A stretch of DNA of 64,000 nt from NCBI GenBank assembly GCA_964234715.1, contig OZ174276.1; one strand, 5' to 3'. A program made the position numbers and the translations under genes. The notes beneath the pieces are model-generated. The model had not been told where the DNA came from. It saw only the letters and a list, made by a program, of their open reading frames with translations, and searched no databases. Shown here piece by piece: positions 48,545 through 56,008 of this stretch (position 1 is the first letter of the stretch; each line of letters begins with the position of its first letter). Source of the DNA: Podarcis melisellensis. Its lineage: Eukaryota.

Positions 48545-49474
48545 CTAATAATTTGGAGAGAAATACAGAAGTTTTCTTTTTTAACGTGGCTTACCAAATG
48601 TAATGCTCTGAACCAGCAGGACCTAAAAATTGCACTGGCAAGTCATACAGGTAGAACACTTAACTGCATTTTTGCAACCATGTTTCCTACTGAGAAAAAT
48701 ATATTTCAGCCTGTTATTTTAGAAGGGGAAAAAAAGAGCCACCTAATCAGAATACCATGGATTTCCACCACCTTAAGCCACAAACCATCACCCCAACATT
48801 TCCAGGCATGGCACAATGCCATGACACAATAGCCTCTTTATAAAGCTTCTAAAAATTGGGAGCACTGACCTTGGACATACAATAGCCTGAAAAAAAGATC
48901 ATTCAGCAAACTGAACTAAAACATCCGAATGAAAAGCAGCTGAGGTATTTTTTAAGTAACAGAATGTGATATTTTAATTGCATACAGCAAAATAAAGGAT
49001 CAAACCAAAGTAGTTTTTGAGCAGTGCTGCATATACTGAAAATGAGTGTTAGTCGAATAATGATGAGAGGTGTTCCACTACTAGCCAACTAAAATCAATG
49101 AATTCTTCTATAAATAATGGGGAAGGAAAGCATGCCACAACTGGAAATAGTATCTCAGAGTAGCCATAGTGGAGGTGAAGGTTATTTTATCTTTGGAATG
49201 CTCATTATTCCTATCATTTTAAAGGCCTGTACAGATGTAACAGGGCTTGAATCCCACATATTATTACTGGATCAAGACCAAGCTCTAGGATGTTTGCTTC
49301 CTGCCACAAGGCTTCTCCTTTTCCATTGTAAGACTTCACAATAATTAAAAGTTACATTTCAATAATTAAAAGTTACATGCCATCGTTTTAATAGTAACCA
49401 GGGTATTCTGCTATACAGGCTCCGAAACACTTAATGAAATCTGGTTAGTACAAAACAGTTGACATCACTGTTCA

Positions 49475-49886
49475 TGTCAGGGAACTGCCATCGGAAAGAG
49501 AGATGGTGCAGAGGCTCCAGCAGACTAGGAGAGATTCTGCAGCGGAGGAGGGAACCAGCAGGGGGAGAGCAGAAGCTCCGGCAGAAGGGGAGTCGGAGGA
49601 GGGAGGGCTCTGGGATACTTCTAGTGAGAATAGTGCAGAGGTAACAAGACCCCCGTTGGCAACTCCCACCCTTCGCCGGAAGCTGTCACGCAGAGAGTCA
49701 CGAAGGCGCATGTCCGTGAAACAACTTTTATGTTGGCGTAAATTTCGTAGACGCCCACTGTCAGATTCTACCAGCGACTAACGGAGTCATGCCTTGGGAG
49801 GCTCCGTTAGTGCCTCGGTTTGGTTGACCAGCCAAACACCAGAGGGATCAAGCTTTTACGCACAAGCAGCTCATTATCCCATCACA
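49475..49886 (+). repeat. 5' LTR (412 bp)
   Basis: Starts tgtcagggaact, ends cccatcaca; no difference from the 3' LTR found by eye. Confidence 0.97.
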
Positions 49887-49888
49887 GC

Positions 49889-49899
49889 AATCTGACAGT
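49889..49899 (+). promoter_or_regulatory. Primer-binding site, self-priming type
   Basis: aatctgacagt, 2 nt after the LTR, is the exact reverse complement of LTR bases 49757-49767 (actgtcagatt); no TGG tRNA-type PBS. Confidence 0.8.
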
Positions 49900-49932
49900 C
49901 TTTGAAAGCAGCTTGTGCAAGCAGAGGGCATC

Positions 49933-50943
49933 ATGAGCGAACCAGCCGGAACCACAGGAGCTGGAGCTGGAGCAGGTCCAAGCCTGGAGGAAAGGTACAG
50001 GGCGTTGGAGGTCCAGCTCGCGCTGCAAACGGCGAGGCTTGAGGAGAGGAGGGCTCAAGATGCGGATAAGGGGAAAACCGCCCCACTTGCCAGAAAGGTG
50101 CCTGGATTGGTGCAGAGATTTGGGGGGGATCCCAGGAACTATCAAGCCTTTAGAACGGAGATGCAATATGCTCTCAATCTACTGTTTGATGACTTCACCG
50201 ATGAGAGCTCTAGAGTGGCGTCCGTAATTAGCCATCTAAAGGGAGGGGCGAAGGACTGGGTTCGACCCCTGATGGCAGCCAATAATGATATCTTAAAGGA
50301 CACGAGGAAGTTTTTTCGCGCCATGGACTTGATGTTTTCCAGCGAGATTGAGCAGGGGGTGGTGCGGAGGCAGTTGATGGCGTGCAAACAGGGGAGCCGA
50401 TCTGTACGTGAGTACTGGACTGAGTTCACTATGCTTATTCATAGACTGGGGTGGGATCTAGCAAGTGAACCTATTCAAATGTTATTTGAAGAAGGGCTCT
50501 CTCCGACAGTGAAAGATGAACTTTCCCGGGTGCCCAGGGCGGAGTCTATGGATCAGCTGACTAAATCTGCGCTGTCCATAGGAGCGCGCCAAGAAGCAAG
50601 AGCTTTGGAAAAGCGGGAAGGAAAGGGGGAACGTTGGAAGGACTTCCGCATTCCAGAGATTCCGGAGCAGTCTTTCCCGCCCGCAGAGCCGATGGAACTG
50701 GGAACAGCGCGCGCGCGCGCAGTTTCAAACACCAGTGAAGGGCGGAAGAAGGAGGGAAAGAGTGCCAAGAGATGTTATCTCTGCCAACAGCCAGGGCACT
50801 TTGCCAGAGTTTGTCCGCAAAGGAAGGAATGGCAGGGCATGGCGGGAACTGTTGGGGAAAAGGAGGAAGGAGAAATAGAGGAACAAGTAAAAGCCAACGC
50901 CTGGTTGCCAACATCAGGGCACAGCAGCCAGGCCAGGGAGTAG
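49933..50943 (+). CDS. gag: Gag (coiled coil, capsid, CCHC zinc knuckle)
   Basis: First ATG at 49933; FGGDP..., QGSRSVREYWTEF major-homology-like region, EPMELG, and CYLCQQPGHFARVC (CX2CX4HX4C). Confidence 0.95.
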   Translation: MSEPAGTTGAGAGAGPSLEERYRALEVQLALQTARLEERRAQDADKGKTAPLARKVPGLVQRFGGDPRNYQAFRTEMQYALNLLFDDFTDESSRVASVISHLKGGAKDWVRPLMAANNDILKDTRKFFRAMDLMFSSEIEQGVVRRQLMACKQGSRSVREYWTEFTMLIHRLGWDLASEPIQMLFEEGLSPTVKDELSRVPRAESMDQLTKSALSIGARQEARALEKREGKGERWKDFRIPEIPEQSFPPAEPMELGTARARAVSNTSEGRKKEGKSAKRCYLCQQPGHFARVCPQRKEWQGMAGTVGEKEEGEIEEQVKANAWLPTSGHSSQARE

Positions 50944-53900
50944 TGAATGTGCCCACGCCGGAACCTCCAAGACCAGCGCTTGTGATAGAGGTGTTGCTGG
51001 AACTGTCAAACGGACACCCACTAAAGATAAAAGCACTATTGGATTCAGGCAGCTCCTGTAATTTCATGAGTAAGGAGTTTGCTGCTGAACATCAGATACA
51101 AACTCTCCCATTAAGTAAGCCTTTGCAAGTAACCACGATTGATGGGAGGGAACTGTTGGGGGGAGAAGTGAGCCAACAGACTGTACCAATGATTATGAGG
51201 GTGGCAAGACACACAGAACTGATAGCGTTTAATGTAGCCACCTTGGGAGGAGCTCCCATCATTCTGGGAATGAGCTGGCTGGCACTACACGATCCGCTAG
51301 TAGGCTGGCATCAGAGGGTGGTTTCCTTTGGATCAGCACATTGCCTAGAACACTGCAAGGAGGGAGAGGGTCAGGCAGGGGCCAGAGCCACTCTAGCAGG
51401 GATGGAAGTGACTGACAAGGGGAAGGTGCCACCACAATACGCTGATTTGATTGACGTCTTCAGTGAAAAGGAAGCAGATAAACTGCCCCCGCACAGACCC
51501 TTTGACTGTCAAATCACCTTACTCCCAGGAGCACAATTGCCAGTGGGCAAGCTGTATGCCATGTCAGACCGTGAGATGCAGGAGTTAAGGGAGTTCATTG
51601 ACAAGAACCTCAAGCGAGGTTTCATCAGAGAGTCACGAGCGGTGGGGGGCAGCCCAGTGTTCTTTGTGGACAAAAAAAACACGGGCAAACCCAGGCTTGT
51701 GTGTGATTTCAGGGCTCTAAATGCTGTGTCAGAACCAGTGACTTTCCCTATGCCCAGAATTGATGACATTCTGACACGGGTGAGAAAAGGGAAGATTTTT
51801 ACCAAGCTGGACCTTAGGGGGGCATATAACTTGATACGTGTGAGGAAGGGGGATGAGTGGAAGACCACTATGTTCACCCCCTTGGGGGCGTTTGAGTACC
51901 TAGTTATGCCTTTCGGATTACAAGGGGGCTCCGCCTGCTTTCAATCATTCATGAATCACGTCCTGGGGCCATTGCTCTACAAGAACTGCGTGGCGTTCTT
52001 AGATGACGTCCTGGTGTACTCAGAGAATGAGGAGCAGCATGTGCAAGATGTTAGAGAAGTACTGAGCAAACTGCGAGAAAATCGGCTGTGGGTGAAACTG
52101 GAGAAATGCCAGTTTCATAGCAGGGAGGTGGAATTCCTGGGGTACCGGTTGTCTGACAAGGGGTTGGCTATGGATCCCAGCAAGGTTCAAGCGGTACTGG
52201 AATGGAAAACAGCAAAGACCAAGAAGGACGTGCAAAGGTTCCTGGGCTTCGGAAACTTCTATAGGAAGTTCATCAAGAACTTTGCCCATTTAACCGCGCC
52301 CATCACGGATTGTCTTAGCAGCAAGAAAAAATTTGCTTGGACGGAAGAAGCGCAACGGGCATTTGAACGCTTAAAGGCAGCGTTTGCGTCGGAGGAGCAA
52401 CTTTTGCACGTGGATCTACAGCAACCAATGCGAGTGGAGACTGACGCATCAGACCGAGCGGTAGGGGCCGTGCTTCTCCAGCCGGGGAAAGATACGTCTG
52501 AATGGAGACCGTGTGCATTCTTCTCGCGGAAGTTGAACAAATCCGAGAGGAACTACATAGTATACGACCGAGAACTGCTCGCCATTCATGAAGCATTCCG
52601 GAGATGGCGGCACTTGCTGATTGGGGCGCAGCACAAGGTTCACGTCCGGACTGACCACAAAAATCTGGAGTACTGGAGAACAGCCCGAGTGCTGAACCAG
52701 AGACAAGTGAGATGGGCCCAGGAGTTCTCCAAATTCAATTTTGAGATTCGTTACGTGCCAGGGTCCGAGAACGTAAGGGCGGACGCTCTTTCCAGAAAGC
52801 CTGAGTACTTAGAGGGGGAGGGCGCGCCGGAAGCAAGGCATGTAATCCCTGAAGACTGCTGGGTGTGTGGGGCGGCTTTGGTGGGGCAGAAAGAACTGTT
52901 AGAGGGTACGGAGAACGACGAATACGCCCAAGAGAAACTCAGAGAACTCAGGAGGACAGAGGAGAACACAGGGGGGTTTGAAGAAAAGAGTGGGGCGTTG
53001 TATTACAAAGGGGCACTGTACATACCCGATGGGGAACTGAGGGGCAGGGTACTCAAGCAGTTGCATGATAGCCCCACAGCGGGGCATTTTGGACAGCACA
53101 AAACCATGTGGTTGGTTACCAGGGAGTTTTGGTGGCCCAAGGTGAGGGAGGACGTACGGGAATATGTCAGGGGTTGCGACAGGTGCCAGCGAGCGAAAGG
53201 GGAGAGGGTGGCGCCAGCGGGGCTCTTACAACCCTTACCCACACCAGAAAGGCCATGGGAGGCAGTCTCCATAGATTTTATGACGGACCTGCCAAAATCC
53301 AAGGGCAAAACGGCGGTCATGGTAGTGGTAGATCTATTAACTAAGATGTGTCATTTTATAGCCTGTTCACATGCGGTCACAGCGGAGGAAACCGCCAAGT
53401 TGTTCGTAGAGCATATTTTCCGGTTGCATGGCGCCCCCTTGAGGGTGGTCAGCGACAGAGGGAAACAGTTTACTTCCAGGTTCTGGAGGAAACTTATGAG
53501 CTTACTGCACGTGGAAATCAATTTCTCCACTGCCCGGCACCCGGAAACAAATGGGCAAGCGGAAAGGGCAAACGGGATTTTACAACAATACCTGAGGTGT
53601 TATGTAAAGGACCGAGAAAATGATTGGGTAGATAAGTTACCTCTGGCAGAATTTGCCTACAACAACGCTGAGAACGTGTCCACAGGGATGAGTCCCTTTA
53701 TGGCAAATTATGGGTGTCATCCCAGGGCATTTCCAGGAGAAGGAGGGGAGAGGTGGAGCGTGCCGGCGGCGGAACATTTTGTTGAAGAGATGGAAGCCAT
53801 CCACCGTCAGCTACAACTTAACTTAGAGAGAGCCAAGGAAGAATATAAAAAGCAAGCAGACAGAAATAGGAGGGAAGGTGAAACTATAAGGGTGGGAGAC

Positions 53901-54110
53901 CGGGTGTGGCTATCCACCCAGGGACTACCTTTCAAGGGGGGTTGTAAGAAACTGAAACCCAAAAGATTGGGACCCTTTGAGGTCATACAGCAGGTGAACC
54001 CAGTAGCATTCAAACTCAGACTGCCCAGTCACATGAAATTGCACCCAGTATTTCACAGGTCATTACTGTCGCCGTACCGAGAGGGACGTGAATGGGGGGG
54101 GGGAGCGTGA
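50889..54110 (+). CDS. pol: Pol (aspartic protease, RT, RNase H, integrase) in the -1 frame relative to gag
   Basis: LLDSGS (D at 51042), MPFGL, FLDD (51996-52007), TDAS/ELLAI/TDHKNL, HHCC zinc finger, D,D(35)E, GPF. The frame is open from 50772; the start given is the inferred frameshift point. Confidence 0.96.
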   Translation, partial: KSQRLVANIRAQQPGQGVVNVPTPEPPRPALVIEVLLELSNGHPLKIKALLDSGSSCNFMSKEFAAEHQIQTLPLSKPLQVTTIDGRELLGGEVSQQTVPMIMRVARHTELIAFNVATLGGAPIILGMSWLALHDPLVGWHQRVVSFGSAHCLEHCKEGEGQAGARATLAGMEVTDKGKVPPQYADLIDVFSEKEADKLPPHRPFDCQITLLPGAQLPVGKLYAMSDREMQELREFIDKNLKRGFIRESRAVGGSPVFFVDKKNTGKPRLVCDFRALNAVSEPVTFPMPRIDDILTRVRKGKIFTKLDLRGAYNLIRVRKGDEWKTTMFTPLGAFEYLVMPFGLQGGSACFQSFMNHVLGPLLYKNCVAFLDDVLVYSENEEQHVQDVREVLSKLRENRLWVKLEKCQFHSREVEFLGYRLSDKGLAMDPSKVQAVLEWKTAKTKKDVQRFLGFGNFYRKFIKNFAHLTAPITDCLSSKKKFAWTEEAQRAFERLKAAFASEEQLLHVDLQQPMRVETDASDRAVGAVLLQPGKDTSEWRPCAFFSRKLNKSERNYIVYDRELLAIHEAFRRWRHLLIGAQHKVHVRTDHKNLEYWRTARVLNQRQVRWAQEFSKFNFEIRYVPGSENVRADALSRKPEYLEGEGAPEARHVIPEDCWVCGAALVGQKELLEGTENDEYAQEKLRELRRTEENTGGFEEKSGALYYKGALYIPDGELRGRVLKQLHDSPTAGHFGQHKTMWLVTREFWWPKVREDVREYVRGCDRCQRAKGERVAPAGLLQPLPTPERPWEAVSIDFMTDLPKSKGKTAVMVVVDLLTKMCHFIACSHAVTAEETAKLFVEHIFRLHGAPLRVVSDRGKQFTSRFWRKLMSLLHVEINFSTARHPETNGQAERANGILQQYLRCYVKDRENDWVDKLPLAEFAYNNAENVSTGMSPFMANYGCHPRAFPGEGGERWSVPAAEHFVEEMEAIHRQLQLNLERAKEEYKKQADRNRREGETIRVGDRVWLSTQGLPFKGGCKKLKPKRLGPFEVIQQVNPVAFKLRLPSHMKLHPVFHRSLLSPYREGREWGGGA

Positions 54111-54885
54111 GAGAGAGGTCTCCCGAACGCCCGTGATAGAAGAGAGAGAACGCGACATGAACGTGGCAGGAATCATTGATTCCAGGTGGAAGGGGGATCA
54201 GGTGGAATATCTGGTAGAATGGGAGGGGGAAGTAGAGTCGGAAAACACTTGGGTACCAGCTGAGGTAGTCAATGACGAGGTTTTAATAGAAACATTTCAT
54301 CGGCGTTTCCCAAAAAAACCGCAACCCGTGGCACGATTTAGAAGGGAACACTTTGGGACCACCGATGAGGAAGGAGAGTTTGGAGGGTTCCCAGAGTCAG
54401 GGGTGGGTGAGGAAGCCGACTCCGACGAAGAAGAGGAAGACGGGGAGAGAGACGGTACGCCATGGTTAGAAGTGTTTGAATCCTCGGACGACGATGAGAG
54501 TTCCTTTAGGGGCTTTCCGCCCTCACCGCCAGTGGGAGAGAAAGCGGGGGGTGAAGGGGGCCCTGAGGGGGAGGTGGATGTCAGGGAACTGCCATCGGAA
54601 AGAGAGATGGTGCAGAGGCTCCAGCAGACTAGGAGAGATTCTGCAGCGGAGGAGGGAACCAGCAGGGGGAGAGCAGAAGCTCCGGCAGAAGGGGAGTCGG
54701 AGGAGGGAGGGCTCTGGGATACTTCTAGTGAGAATAGTGCAGAGGTAACAAGACCCCCGTTGGCAACTCCCACCCTTCGCCGGAAGCTGTCACGCAGAGA
54801 GTCACGAAGGCGCATGTCCGTGAAACAACTTTTATGTTGGCGTAAATTTCGTAGACGCCCACTGTCAGATTCTACCAGCGACTAA
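54104..54885 (+). CDS. Integrase C-terminal extension: chromodomain, acidic FxGF motifs and LTR-encoded basic tail (+1 frame relative to pol)
   Basis: VAGIIDSRW...VEYLVEWEG...ENTWVP...LIETFH is a chromodomain pattern (54157-54321); separated from pol by a G10 run at 54094-54103. Confidence 0.85.
54565..54578 (+). promoter_or_regulatory. Polypurine tract
   Basis: gagggggaggtgga directly abutting the 3' LTR. Confidence 0.85.
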
Positions 54886-54990
54886 CGGAGTCATGCCTTG
54901 GGAGGCTCCGTTAGTGCCTCGGTTTGGTTGACCAGCCAAACACCAGAGGGATCAAGCTTTTACGCACAAGCAGCTCATTATCCCATCACA
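54579..54990 (+). repeat. 3' LTR (412 bp)
   Basis: Direct repeat of 49475-49886, followed by TSD gttca. Confidence 0.97.
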
Positions 54991-55151
54991 GTTCATATAG
55001 CTTGTATAAATATAGTTTGGTCTTTATATGCCTAACTGTAAATACTCTATTCCATGTTCAGTAATATAATCTGTGTTCTTTCGCTGGGAAATTCATGACA
55101 GGTCTTTGTAGCATTGTCTCTAAAGCAGAGGATAGGGAAAGCCAGATTTCA

Positions 55152-55382
<231 letters not shown>

Positions 55383-56008
55383 CTAGAGAGAGAAATACGA
55401 AATTACTCCATGGGATAAGTGAAGGCAGGAATGAATTGATTCCTCCTATTACATAGCAGCCTGCCTGGTGGCTTTGGATGCTTCTGAATGTGCCTGGGAT
55501 TTGCAGCACCTTGGGAAACCACAGACATCTCATGCCCTAGAGGGGACTGCAGTCTGAAAAGGGGGGGTATTTATTTTTTTGTATTCCTCCCCACCAAATG
55601 GCTTTACATGGGTGGTATGTAGGGTGCAACTCCATCACAGATGCTGAGTTCTACTCAGGAGCGGTCTAGATGCCTCTCTGCATGAAACCAGCCAGTTACA
55701 ATCATCCCGAGAAATGGCTGGATCTCAATTCATGTTGGCAGCCATTGTGGTGTAGTGGTTAGTGTATCACACCAGGACTAGGGATACCCTGGGTTTAATC
55801 AATACCCTATCCCCCCCACGCTTTCAAAAGGAAGCTTGTTCCTTCAGAGGTTAAATGTACTCTGCACATACCTAGAGGTATGAGAGTACATGCAAAAACA
55901 CTTGCTTACTTTTCCTACTGAAGTTAAGGGATTTAGAAGAGAGAATTCTAATTCAAAATCTAAGAACTTGGCCAATCTGCCCACTCTCCTTTGAGAACAG
56001 CCATGTTA

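Follow-up and report, generated by a model that had tools for sequence, protein, structure and literature searches.

Two short peptides encoded in tandem on the integrase tail of a lizard retrotransposon are in all likelihood functional, selected short linear motifs, and from their sequence we lean towards reading them as candidate docking motifs for TFIIS-N-terminal-type domains (TNDs) and the integrase-binding domain (IBD) of LEDGF/p75, carried on the disordered integrase tail of a squamate chromovirus lineage. The DNA analysed is a stretch of 64,000 nucleotides from Podarcis melisellensis (contig OZ174276.1 of assembly GCA_964234715.1), referred to below as the window, in which a single complete element houses both motifs. 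Such motifs matter because tethering of the integrase sets the landing sites of a retroelement, and hence its harm to the host or its tolerance by it.

The element shows the full architecture of a Ty3/Gypsy chromovirus, with all its features on the plus strand: LTRs, gag, a pol of the order PR-RT-RH-IN, and a chromodomain 3' of the integrase. The 5' and 3' LTRs (49475..49886 and 54579..54990) are each 412 bp long with TG...CA termini, are 100% identical to each other and are bordered by the same five bases, GTTCA, as target site duplication (TSD; 49470..49474 and 54991..54995). The gag ORF (49915..50943) specifies a capsid and a CCHC zinc knuckle (Pfam Retrotrans_gag, 1.1e-11; zf-CCHC, 1.7e-5). 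The pol ORF (50772..54110) encodes protease, RT, RNase H and an integrase comprising the zinc-binding domain, catalytic core and SH3-like domain (Pfam RVP_2, RVT_1, RT_RNaseH, Integrase_H2C2, rve and SH3_Tf2-1); it overlaps gag by about 170 nt (50772-50943) and lies in the -1 frame, the usual frameshift arrangement. This lizard Gypsy-type retrotransposon with identical LTRs is young. Its closest database proteins come from the wall lizard Podarcis muralis, with 91-94% identity in the integrase. The integrase domains of this family are also found inside a P. muralis gene model annotated as vomeronasal type-2 receptor 26-like (P0007), which indicates that an element insertion was taken up into a host gene model. 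In the DNA runs X1 and X4, which represent at least two organisms, the element (49475-54990) is matched by thousands of contigs at 90-100% identity; the family is abundant, and has lately been active, in more than one related species. Elsewhere in the 64-kb window five further long ORFs gave no Pfam match, and no host gene was recognised to which the transcribed intron proposed in the sequence-only reading could be assigned. Within the element, an antisense ORF at 54297-54815 likewise gave no Pfam match.

The chromodomain (54163..54306; Pfam Chromo, 1.3e-9; AF2 pLDDT about 90) and the motif-bearing tail share one ORF (54088-54885), with the Chromo match at its start. In the window copy this ORF is shifted relative to that of pol, which stops at 54110, and the frame changes at a run of G (54092..54103) whose length differs by one letter in some of the DNA-run contigs of related copies. 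The frame change may be a true break, an assembly error or the result of slippage. The two pieces, pol and chromodomain/tail, were searched separately and the frame break was left as read. In the relatives L001 and L002 the integrase, chromodomain and tail form one unbroken ORF, in each case on a single contig. Past the motifs, the ORF is open through the polypurine tract (PPT; 54565..54578), a purine run abutting the 3' LTR and translated within the tail, and continues into about 100 codons of the U3 of the 3' LTR (54579..54885), ending in a basic C-terminus with the stop at 54883-54885. This LTR-encoded end is conserved in P0002, P0005 and P0121 and partly in P0006, the member with 69% integrase identity; as the basic C-terminal end is kept down to that level of divergence, the LTR seems to code for protein in part. 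A Gly/Glu-rich stretch of the GGEGG type, just 5' of the PPT, is present in all relatives. Bulk RNA-seq of a related species gave no read coverage over 54075-54442, and sparse reads over gag and pol.

Translation of 54337..54390 and 54463..54516 recovers exactly the two 18-residue peptides which the sequence-only reading had singled out, and both show the plan it ascribed to them: a hydrophobic anchor ending in F, 8-9 acidic and Ser/Thr residues, and a terminal FxGF. Motif 1 (54337..54390) comprises a helix ending in F, an 8-residue acidic/Thr linker and FGGF, with a helix predicted over its N-terminal part; motif 2 (54463..54516) has a W-x-x-V-F anchor, a 9-residue acidic/Ser linker and FRGF. 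The linkers contain 4-5 acidic and 2-4 Ser/Thr residues, and each motif has two predicted CK2-type sites of the form S/T-x-x-D/E, a type of site that the earlier reading had also named. Between them lies a variable, acidic inter-motif linker (54391..54462). The first motif begins 9 codons past the Chromo match, and both lie 5' of the PPT and the 3' LTR. Thus, the earlier placement of the motifs on the integrase tail after the chromodomain holds as to position, with the qualification that pol and the tail are in different frames in the window copy. AF2 models the chromodomain with confidence and places a helix over the motif 1 anchor, with pLDDT below 50 in most of the remaining tail; it gave no helix for motif 2 in isolation. 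Pfam recognised no domain in the tail, and the best score of a protein atlas search with the tail, 0.84, concerns a disordered stretch and carries little information.

A scan of the related proteins for FxGF in the tail singled out three families. Members of the window family have integrase identities of 88-91% (P0001, P0002 and P0005) or 69% (P0006) and usually carry two motifs. A second Podarcis family (P0008-P0014 and P0030), with about 55% integrase identity, has a single motif that adjoins the chromodomain and whose Ser/Thr linker reads TPTLSAST. The third family, from Anolis carolinensis (P0071 and P0075, clusters of 75 and 46 sequences), has 46% integrase identity, one motif and no chromodomain. 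The fragments P0121, P0123, P0125 and P0171 group with the window family, at 60%, 58%, 45% and 49% identity to the chromodomain/tail ORF respectively, and both motifs are present in P0121; searches with the tail regions of full-length relatives returned known clusters only. Several of these relatives are automatic UniRef gene models; L001 and L002 are plain contig ORFs.

Across 20 aligned motif instances from these proteins the anchor F, the G of FxGF and its final F are invariant, a hydrophobic residue stands 1-4 positions upstream of the anchor F, and no linker is shorter than 8 or longer than 9 residues. FxGF starts with F in 17 instances; the other three, which start with L or M, are motif 1 of the three closest relatives (M/L-E-G-F). 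Motif 1 occupies the same position in all three chromodomain-bearing subfamilies and is degenerate in P0006; motif 2 is conserved in P0001, P0002, P0005, P0121 and P0006 and is missing from one of the three families. In the 55% Podarcis family (P0008:1112-1170, P0010, P0013 and P0014) a conserved Trp-rich element stands where the window family has motif 2. The linker of that family's single motif is devoid of acidic residues and has five Ser/Thr, including a TP site; going by its composition, binding might in this family depend wholly on phosphorylation.

The contrast between the motifs and their surroundings is marked. In the tail alignment the motifs retain 66-70% pairwise identity with 0-2% gaps, whereas identity drops to 32-35%, with about 19% gaps, between the motifs and downstream of motif 2; conservation of the motifs against a diverging linker is what the earlier reading had named as a check. 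Non-synonymous change (pN) between the window copy and L001 amounts to 0.157 in the motifs, as against 0.38 in the linker and 0.225 in the chromodomain. In the same comparison the synonymous sites have reached saturation, and the codons for F, G and R in the motif cores show synonymous differences, which indicates that selection acts on the peptide and not on the nucleotides. Hence, the motifs are under purifying selection at the protein level.

The TND-interacting motif (TIM) is defined by an obligate short helix anchored by F, V, L or I and by a linker of 8-16 residues that is acidic and has much G and CK2-phosphorylated S/T, while the FxGF is optional in general and essential in proteins that bind LEDGF and HRP2; many proteins carry several such motifs, for example two in JPO2 and three in IWS1 (PMC9987994). 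The window motifs agree with this definition in every feature that can be read from sequence: anchor, linker, FxGF, CK2-type sites and disordered context. Thus, the assignment of both peptides to the IBM/TIM type, which the sequence-only reading had proposed, conforms to the published description (PMC9987994). Docking of FxGF on a LEDGF-type domain is conserved from flies, where it is seen in JIL-1 and JASPer, to humans (PMC6877644), which makes the lizard orthologue a reasonable target.

A profile built from the 20 instances and run against 177,635 distinct PDB chain sequences retrieved a single match, 6EMO_A, at a weak E-value of 0.77. This chain is the LEDGF/p75 IBD fused to motif 1 of JPO2, and the profile aligns on the JPO2 motif itself; the JPO2 peptide, which the earlier reading had listed for comparison, is the one that the search recovers. 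The Anolis motif alone has the same chain as its top PDB match (E-value 0.095, again weak), with 12 of 20 residues identical; neither E-value is significant by itself. Motif 2 of the window alone gave no match in the PDB, a longer stretch of P0121 gave chance-level matches only, and none of the PDB searches with the motifs retrieved the remaining IBM/TIM peptides of solved structure. As for the Anolis proteins themselves (P0071:976-995 and P0075, which have no chromodomain), their motif shares these 12 of 20 residues with human JPO2 motif 1 (6EMO), a likeness that could be due to capture of a host sequence or to tight convergence. Full-text searches of a limited corpus, which did not include the primary IBM papers, found no paper linking FxGF, TIM or IBM motifs to transposable-element integrases; this accords with the earlier statement that no such description was known for an LTR retrotransposon.

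Conservation and purifying selection establish that the peptides have a function without naming their partner, and real, selected motifs might therefore serve another role: an intramolecular contact, either with the integrase or with the chromodomain that has lost its cage, binding of H2A-H2B by an acidic-aromatic stretch, or a CK2-regulated signal for import or stability. The direct adjacency of motif 1 to the chromodomain would suit the first of these, and the family with the TPTLSAST linker, not being acidic, also speaks for a role other than docking. Against this, the IBM is defined by just these features, namely a fixed spacing, a G that never varies and the precise order of helix, linker and FxGF; the sole look-alike in the PDB is an IBM bound to LEDGF, and in the AF2 model the motif is not packed against the chromodomain. 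We regard such roles as less likely than docking, yet as its strongest competitors.

Far less probable is that the motifs arose by chance in a tail of low complexity and acidic composition, or as a by-product of a nucleotide-level signal near the PPT. The tail is indeed rich in E, D and G and lies close to both the PPT and the LTR. With the search pattern set as F, then 7-11 residues including at least five D/E/S/T, then FxGF, two or more full patterns arose in only 0.047% of cases when the 89-residue tail was shuffled 200,000 times with its composition kept, which argues against chance. When the window is translated in all six frames (127,996 residues), the pattern occurs only at the two motif sites, and in the gathered related proteins (207,285 residues) all 28 matches fall in integrase C-terminal tails of squamate elements. 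A nucleotide signal is contradicted by the synonymous variation of the key codons, at saturated synonymous sites, with the residues kept; moreover, Rfam found no match on either strand of 49000-55500, and the motifs lie 50-240 nt upstream of the PPT, at a distance that differs between families.

Least credible of all is that the FGGF of motif 1 acts in particle trafficking as an AP-1/GGA gamma-ear (GAE) binding motif: the gamma-ear pattern is one of acidic residues followed by F-G-x-hydrophobic, which the acidic-F-G-G-F of window motif 1 fits, but the FRGF of motif 2 does not, and in the relatives, which show F/L/M-x-G-F, the first position is followed by E, V, I, Q, R, H or L, so that the conserved G stands at +2 and not at +1. 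Judged by eye, the conserved positions fit neither the gamma-ear nor the FFAT nor the KEAP1 ETGE pattern.

The phyletic distribution of the motif was assessed on an integrase tree of 117 rows. Squamate elements form one clade in it with 95% support. Nested in this clade is a subclade of 13 rows (99% support) whose members all carry the motif where the tail is preserved; the Anolis motif family forms a separate long branch. The motif is absent from seven squamate rows and from all of the roughly 95 non-squamate chromoviruses. It is thus spread over three squamate lineages, with integrase identities of 46-91%.

Targeting to heterochromatin via a chromodomain has its textbook example in the chromoviruses, and the state of the aromatic cage with which this domain holds methyl-lysine follows the distribution of the motif. 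In the window element the cage is degenerate, with M, W and E at its three positions. More generally, all three aromatic residues are intact in 95 of 100 motif-less chromodomains, as against none of the 16 motif-bearing ones, nine of which retain one aromatic cage residue, one retains two and six have none; in the Anolis motif lineage the chromodomain has been lost altogether. As the link between motif and cage loss represents only one or two independent events, it is suggestive and no statistical proof. On these sequences, the coupling would suit a swap of targeting mode. The sequence-only reading had put forward just such a swap of heterochromatin reading for a linear motif: the cage is lost in exactly those lineages that bear the motif, in keeping with the proposal, while the persistence of a chromodomain, albeit a degenerate one, departs from it.

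Under the docking reading, the anchor helix and the FxGF would insert into two hydrophobic pockets of a TFIIS-N-terminal-type domain, and the linker would be phosphorylated at its CK2-type sites, which probably strengthens the contact. To judge by the resemblance, the partner may be LEDGF/PSIP1 or HDGFL2, possibly IWS1 or another TND protein. Points that weaken this reading are the M/L-E-G-F form of motif 1 in the closest relatives, its decay in P0006, the non-acidic linker of the single motif in the 55% family, the frame shift of the window tail, the missing RNA coverage of the motif region and the weak PDB E-values. The integration complex would in this way be tethered to transcribed chromatin marked by H3K36me3, and such tethering might take over from the reading of H3K9me that was presumably lost with the decay of the aromatic cage. 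From this we tentatively derive a wider proposal: one lineage of vertebrate LTR retrotransposons may have converged with lentiviruses on the LEDGF/TND hub by mimicking the host docking motif, with the Anolis branch nearly copying JPO2 motif 1, and may have dropped methyl-H3K9 reading, a retargeting from heterochromatin to transcribed gene bodies which possibly evolved or was captured more than once in squamates.

If true, this would be the first retrotransposon case of linear-motif mimicry of the LEDGF/TND hub, a natural counterpart to engineered LEDGF retargeting, and a second, independent route to the factor used by HIV. Sister families with and without the motif within one genome would offer built-in controls.

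Among known systems, the motifs are closest to the IBM/TIM of host proteins (JPO2/CDCA7L, IWS1, POGZ, MLL1, MED1, ASK and fly JIL-1), with which they share the helix leading to an F anchor, the CK2-type linker, here of 8-9 residues, the FxGF and the disorder; their tandem arrangement in the window tail is likewise seen in JPO2 (PMC9987994). Unlike the host motifs, they are located on a retrotransposon integrase instead of a host transcription factor, and in some element copies the first F is replaced by L or M, or the Ser/Thr linker lacks acidic residues.

With the lentiviral integrase-LEDGF/p75 pair the element would share two things, both as proposed: the host hub, formed by the IBD/TND of an H3K36me3 reader, and integration in transcribed gene bodies as the outcome. 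HIV integrase binds the IBD via a folded interface of its catalytic-core dimer, whereas in the lizard element a disordered linear motif would take the site used by the cellular partners.

Among retroelements that use integrase tails, the MLV tail mimics host ligands of the domain it binds, and the contact of Ty5 with Sir4 is controlled by phosphorylation. The gammaretroviral (MLV) integrase C-terminal tail bound to the BET ET domain, the Ty5 integrase targeting domain bound to Sir4 and the Ty1 integrase bound to AC40 (PMC7459421) are established tethers, and in the lizard element too a short C-terminal integrase peptide is proposed to link the integration complex with a chromatin or transcription factor of the host. 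The differences lie in the host domain, in the class of motif and in the element, which is a vertebrate Ty3/Gypsy. The proposed mechanism belongs with integrase tethering by a C-terminal host-binding peptide. Finally, the element has the same architecture as canonical chromoviruses such as Tf1, MAGGY and those of vertebrates, with the chromodomain following the SH3-like domain of the integrase, but is distinguished from them by the loss of the aromatic cage and by a tail extended with the motifs and an LTR-encoded end.
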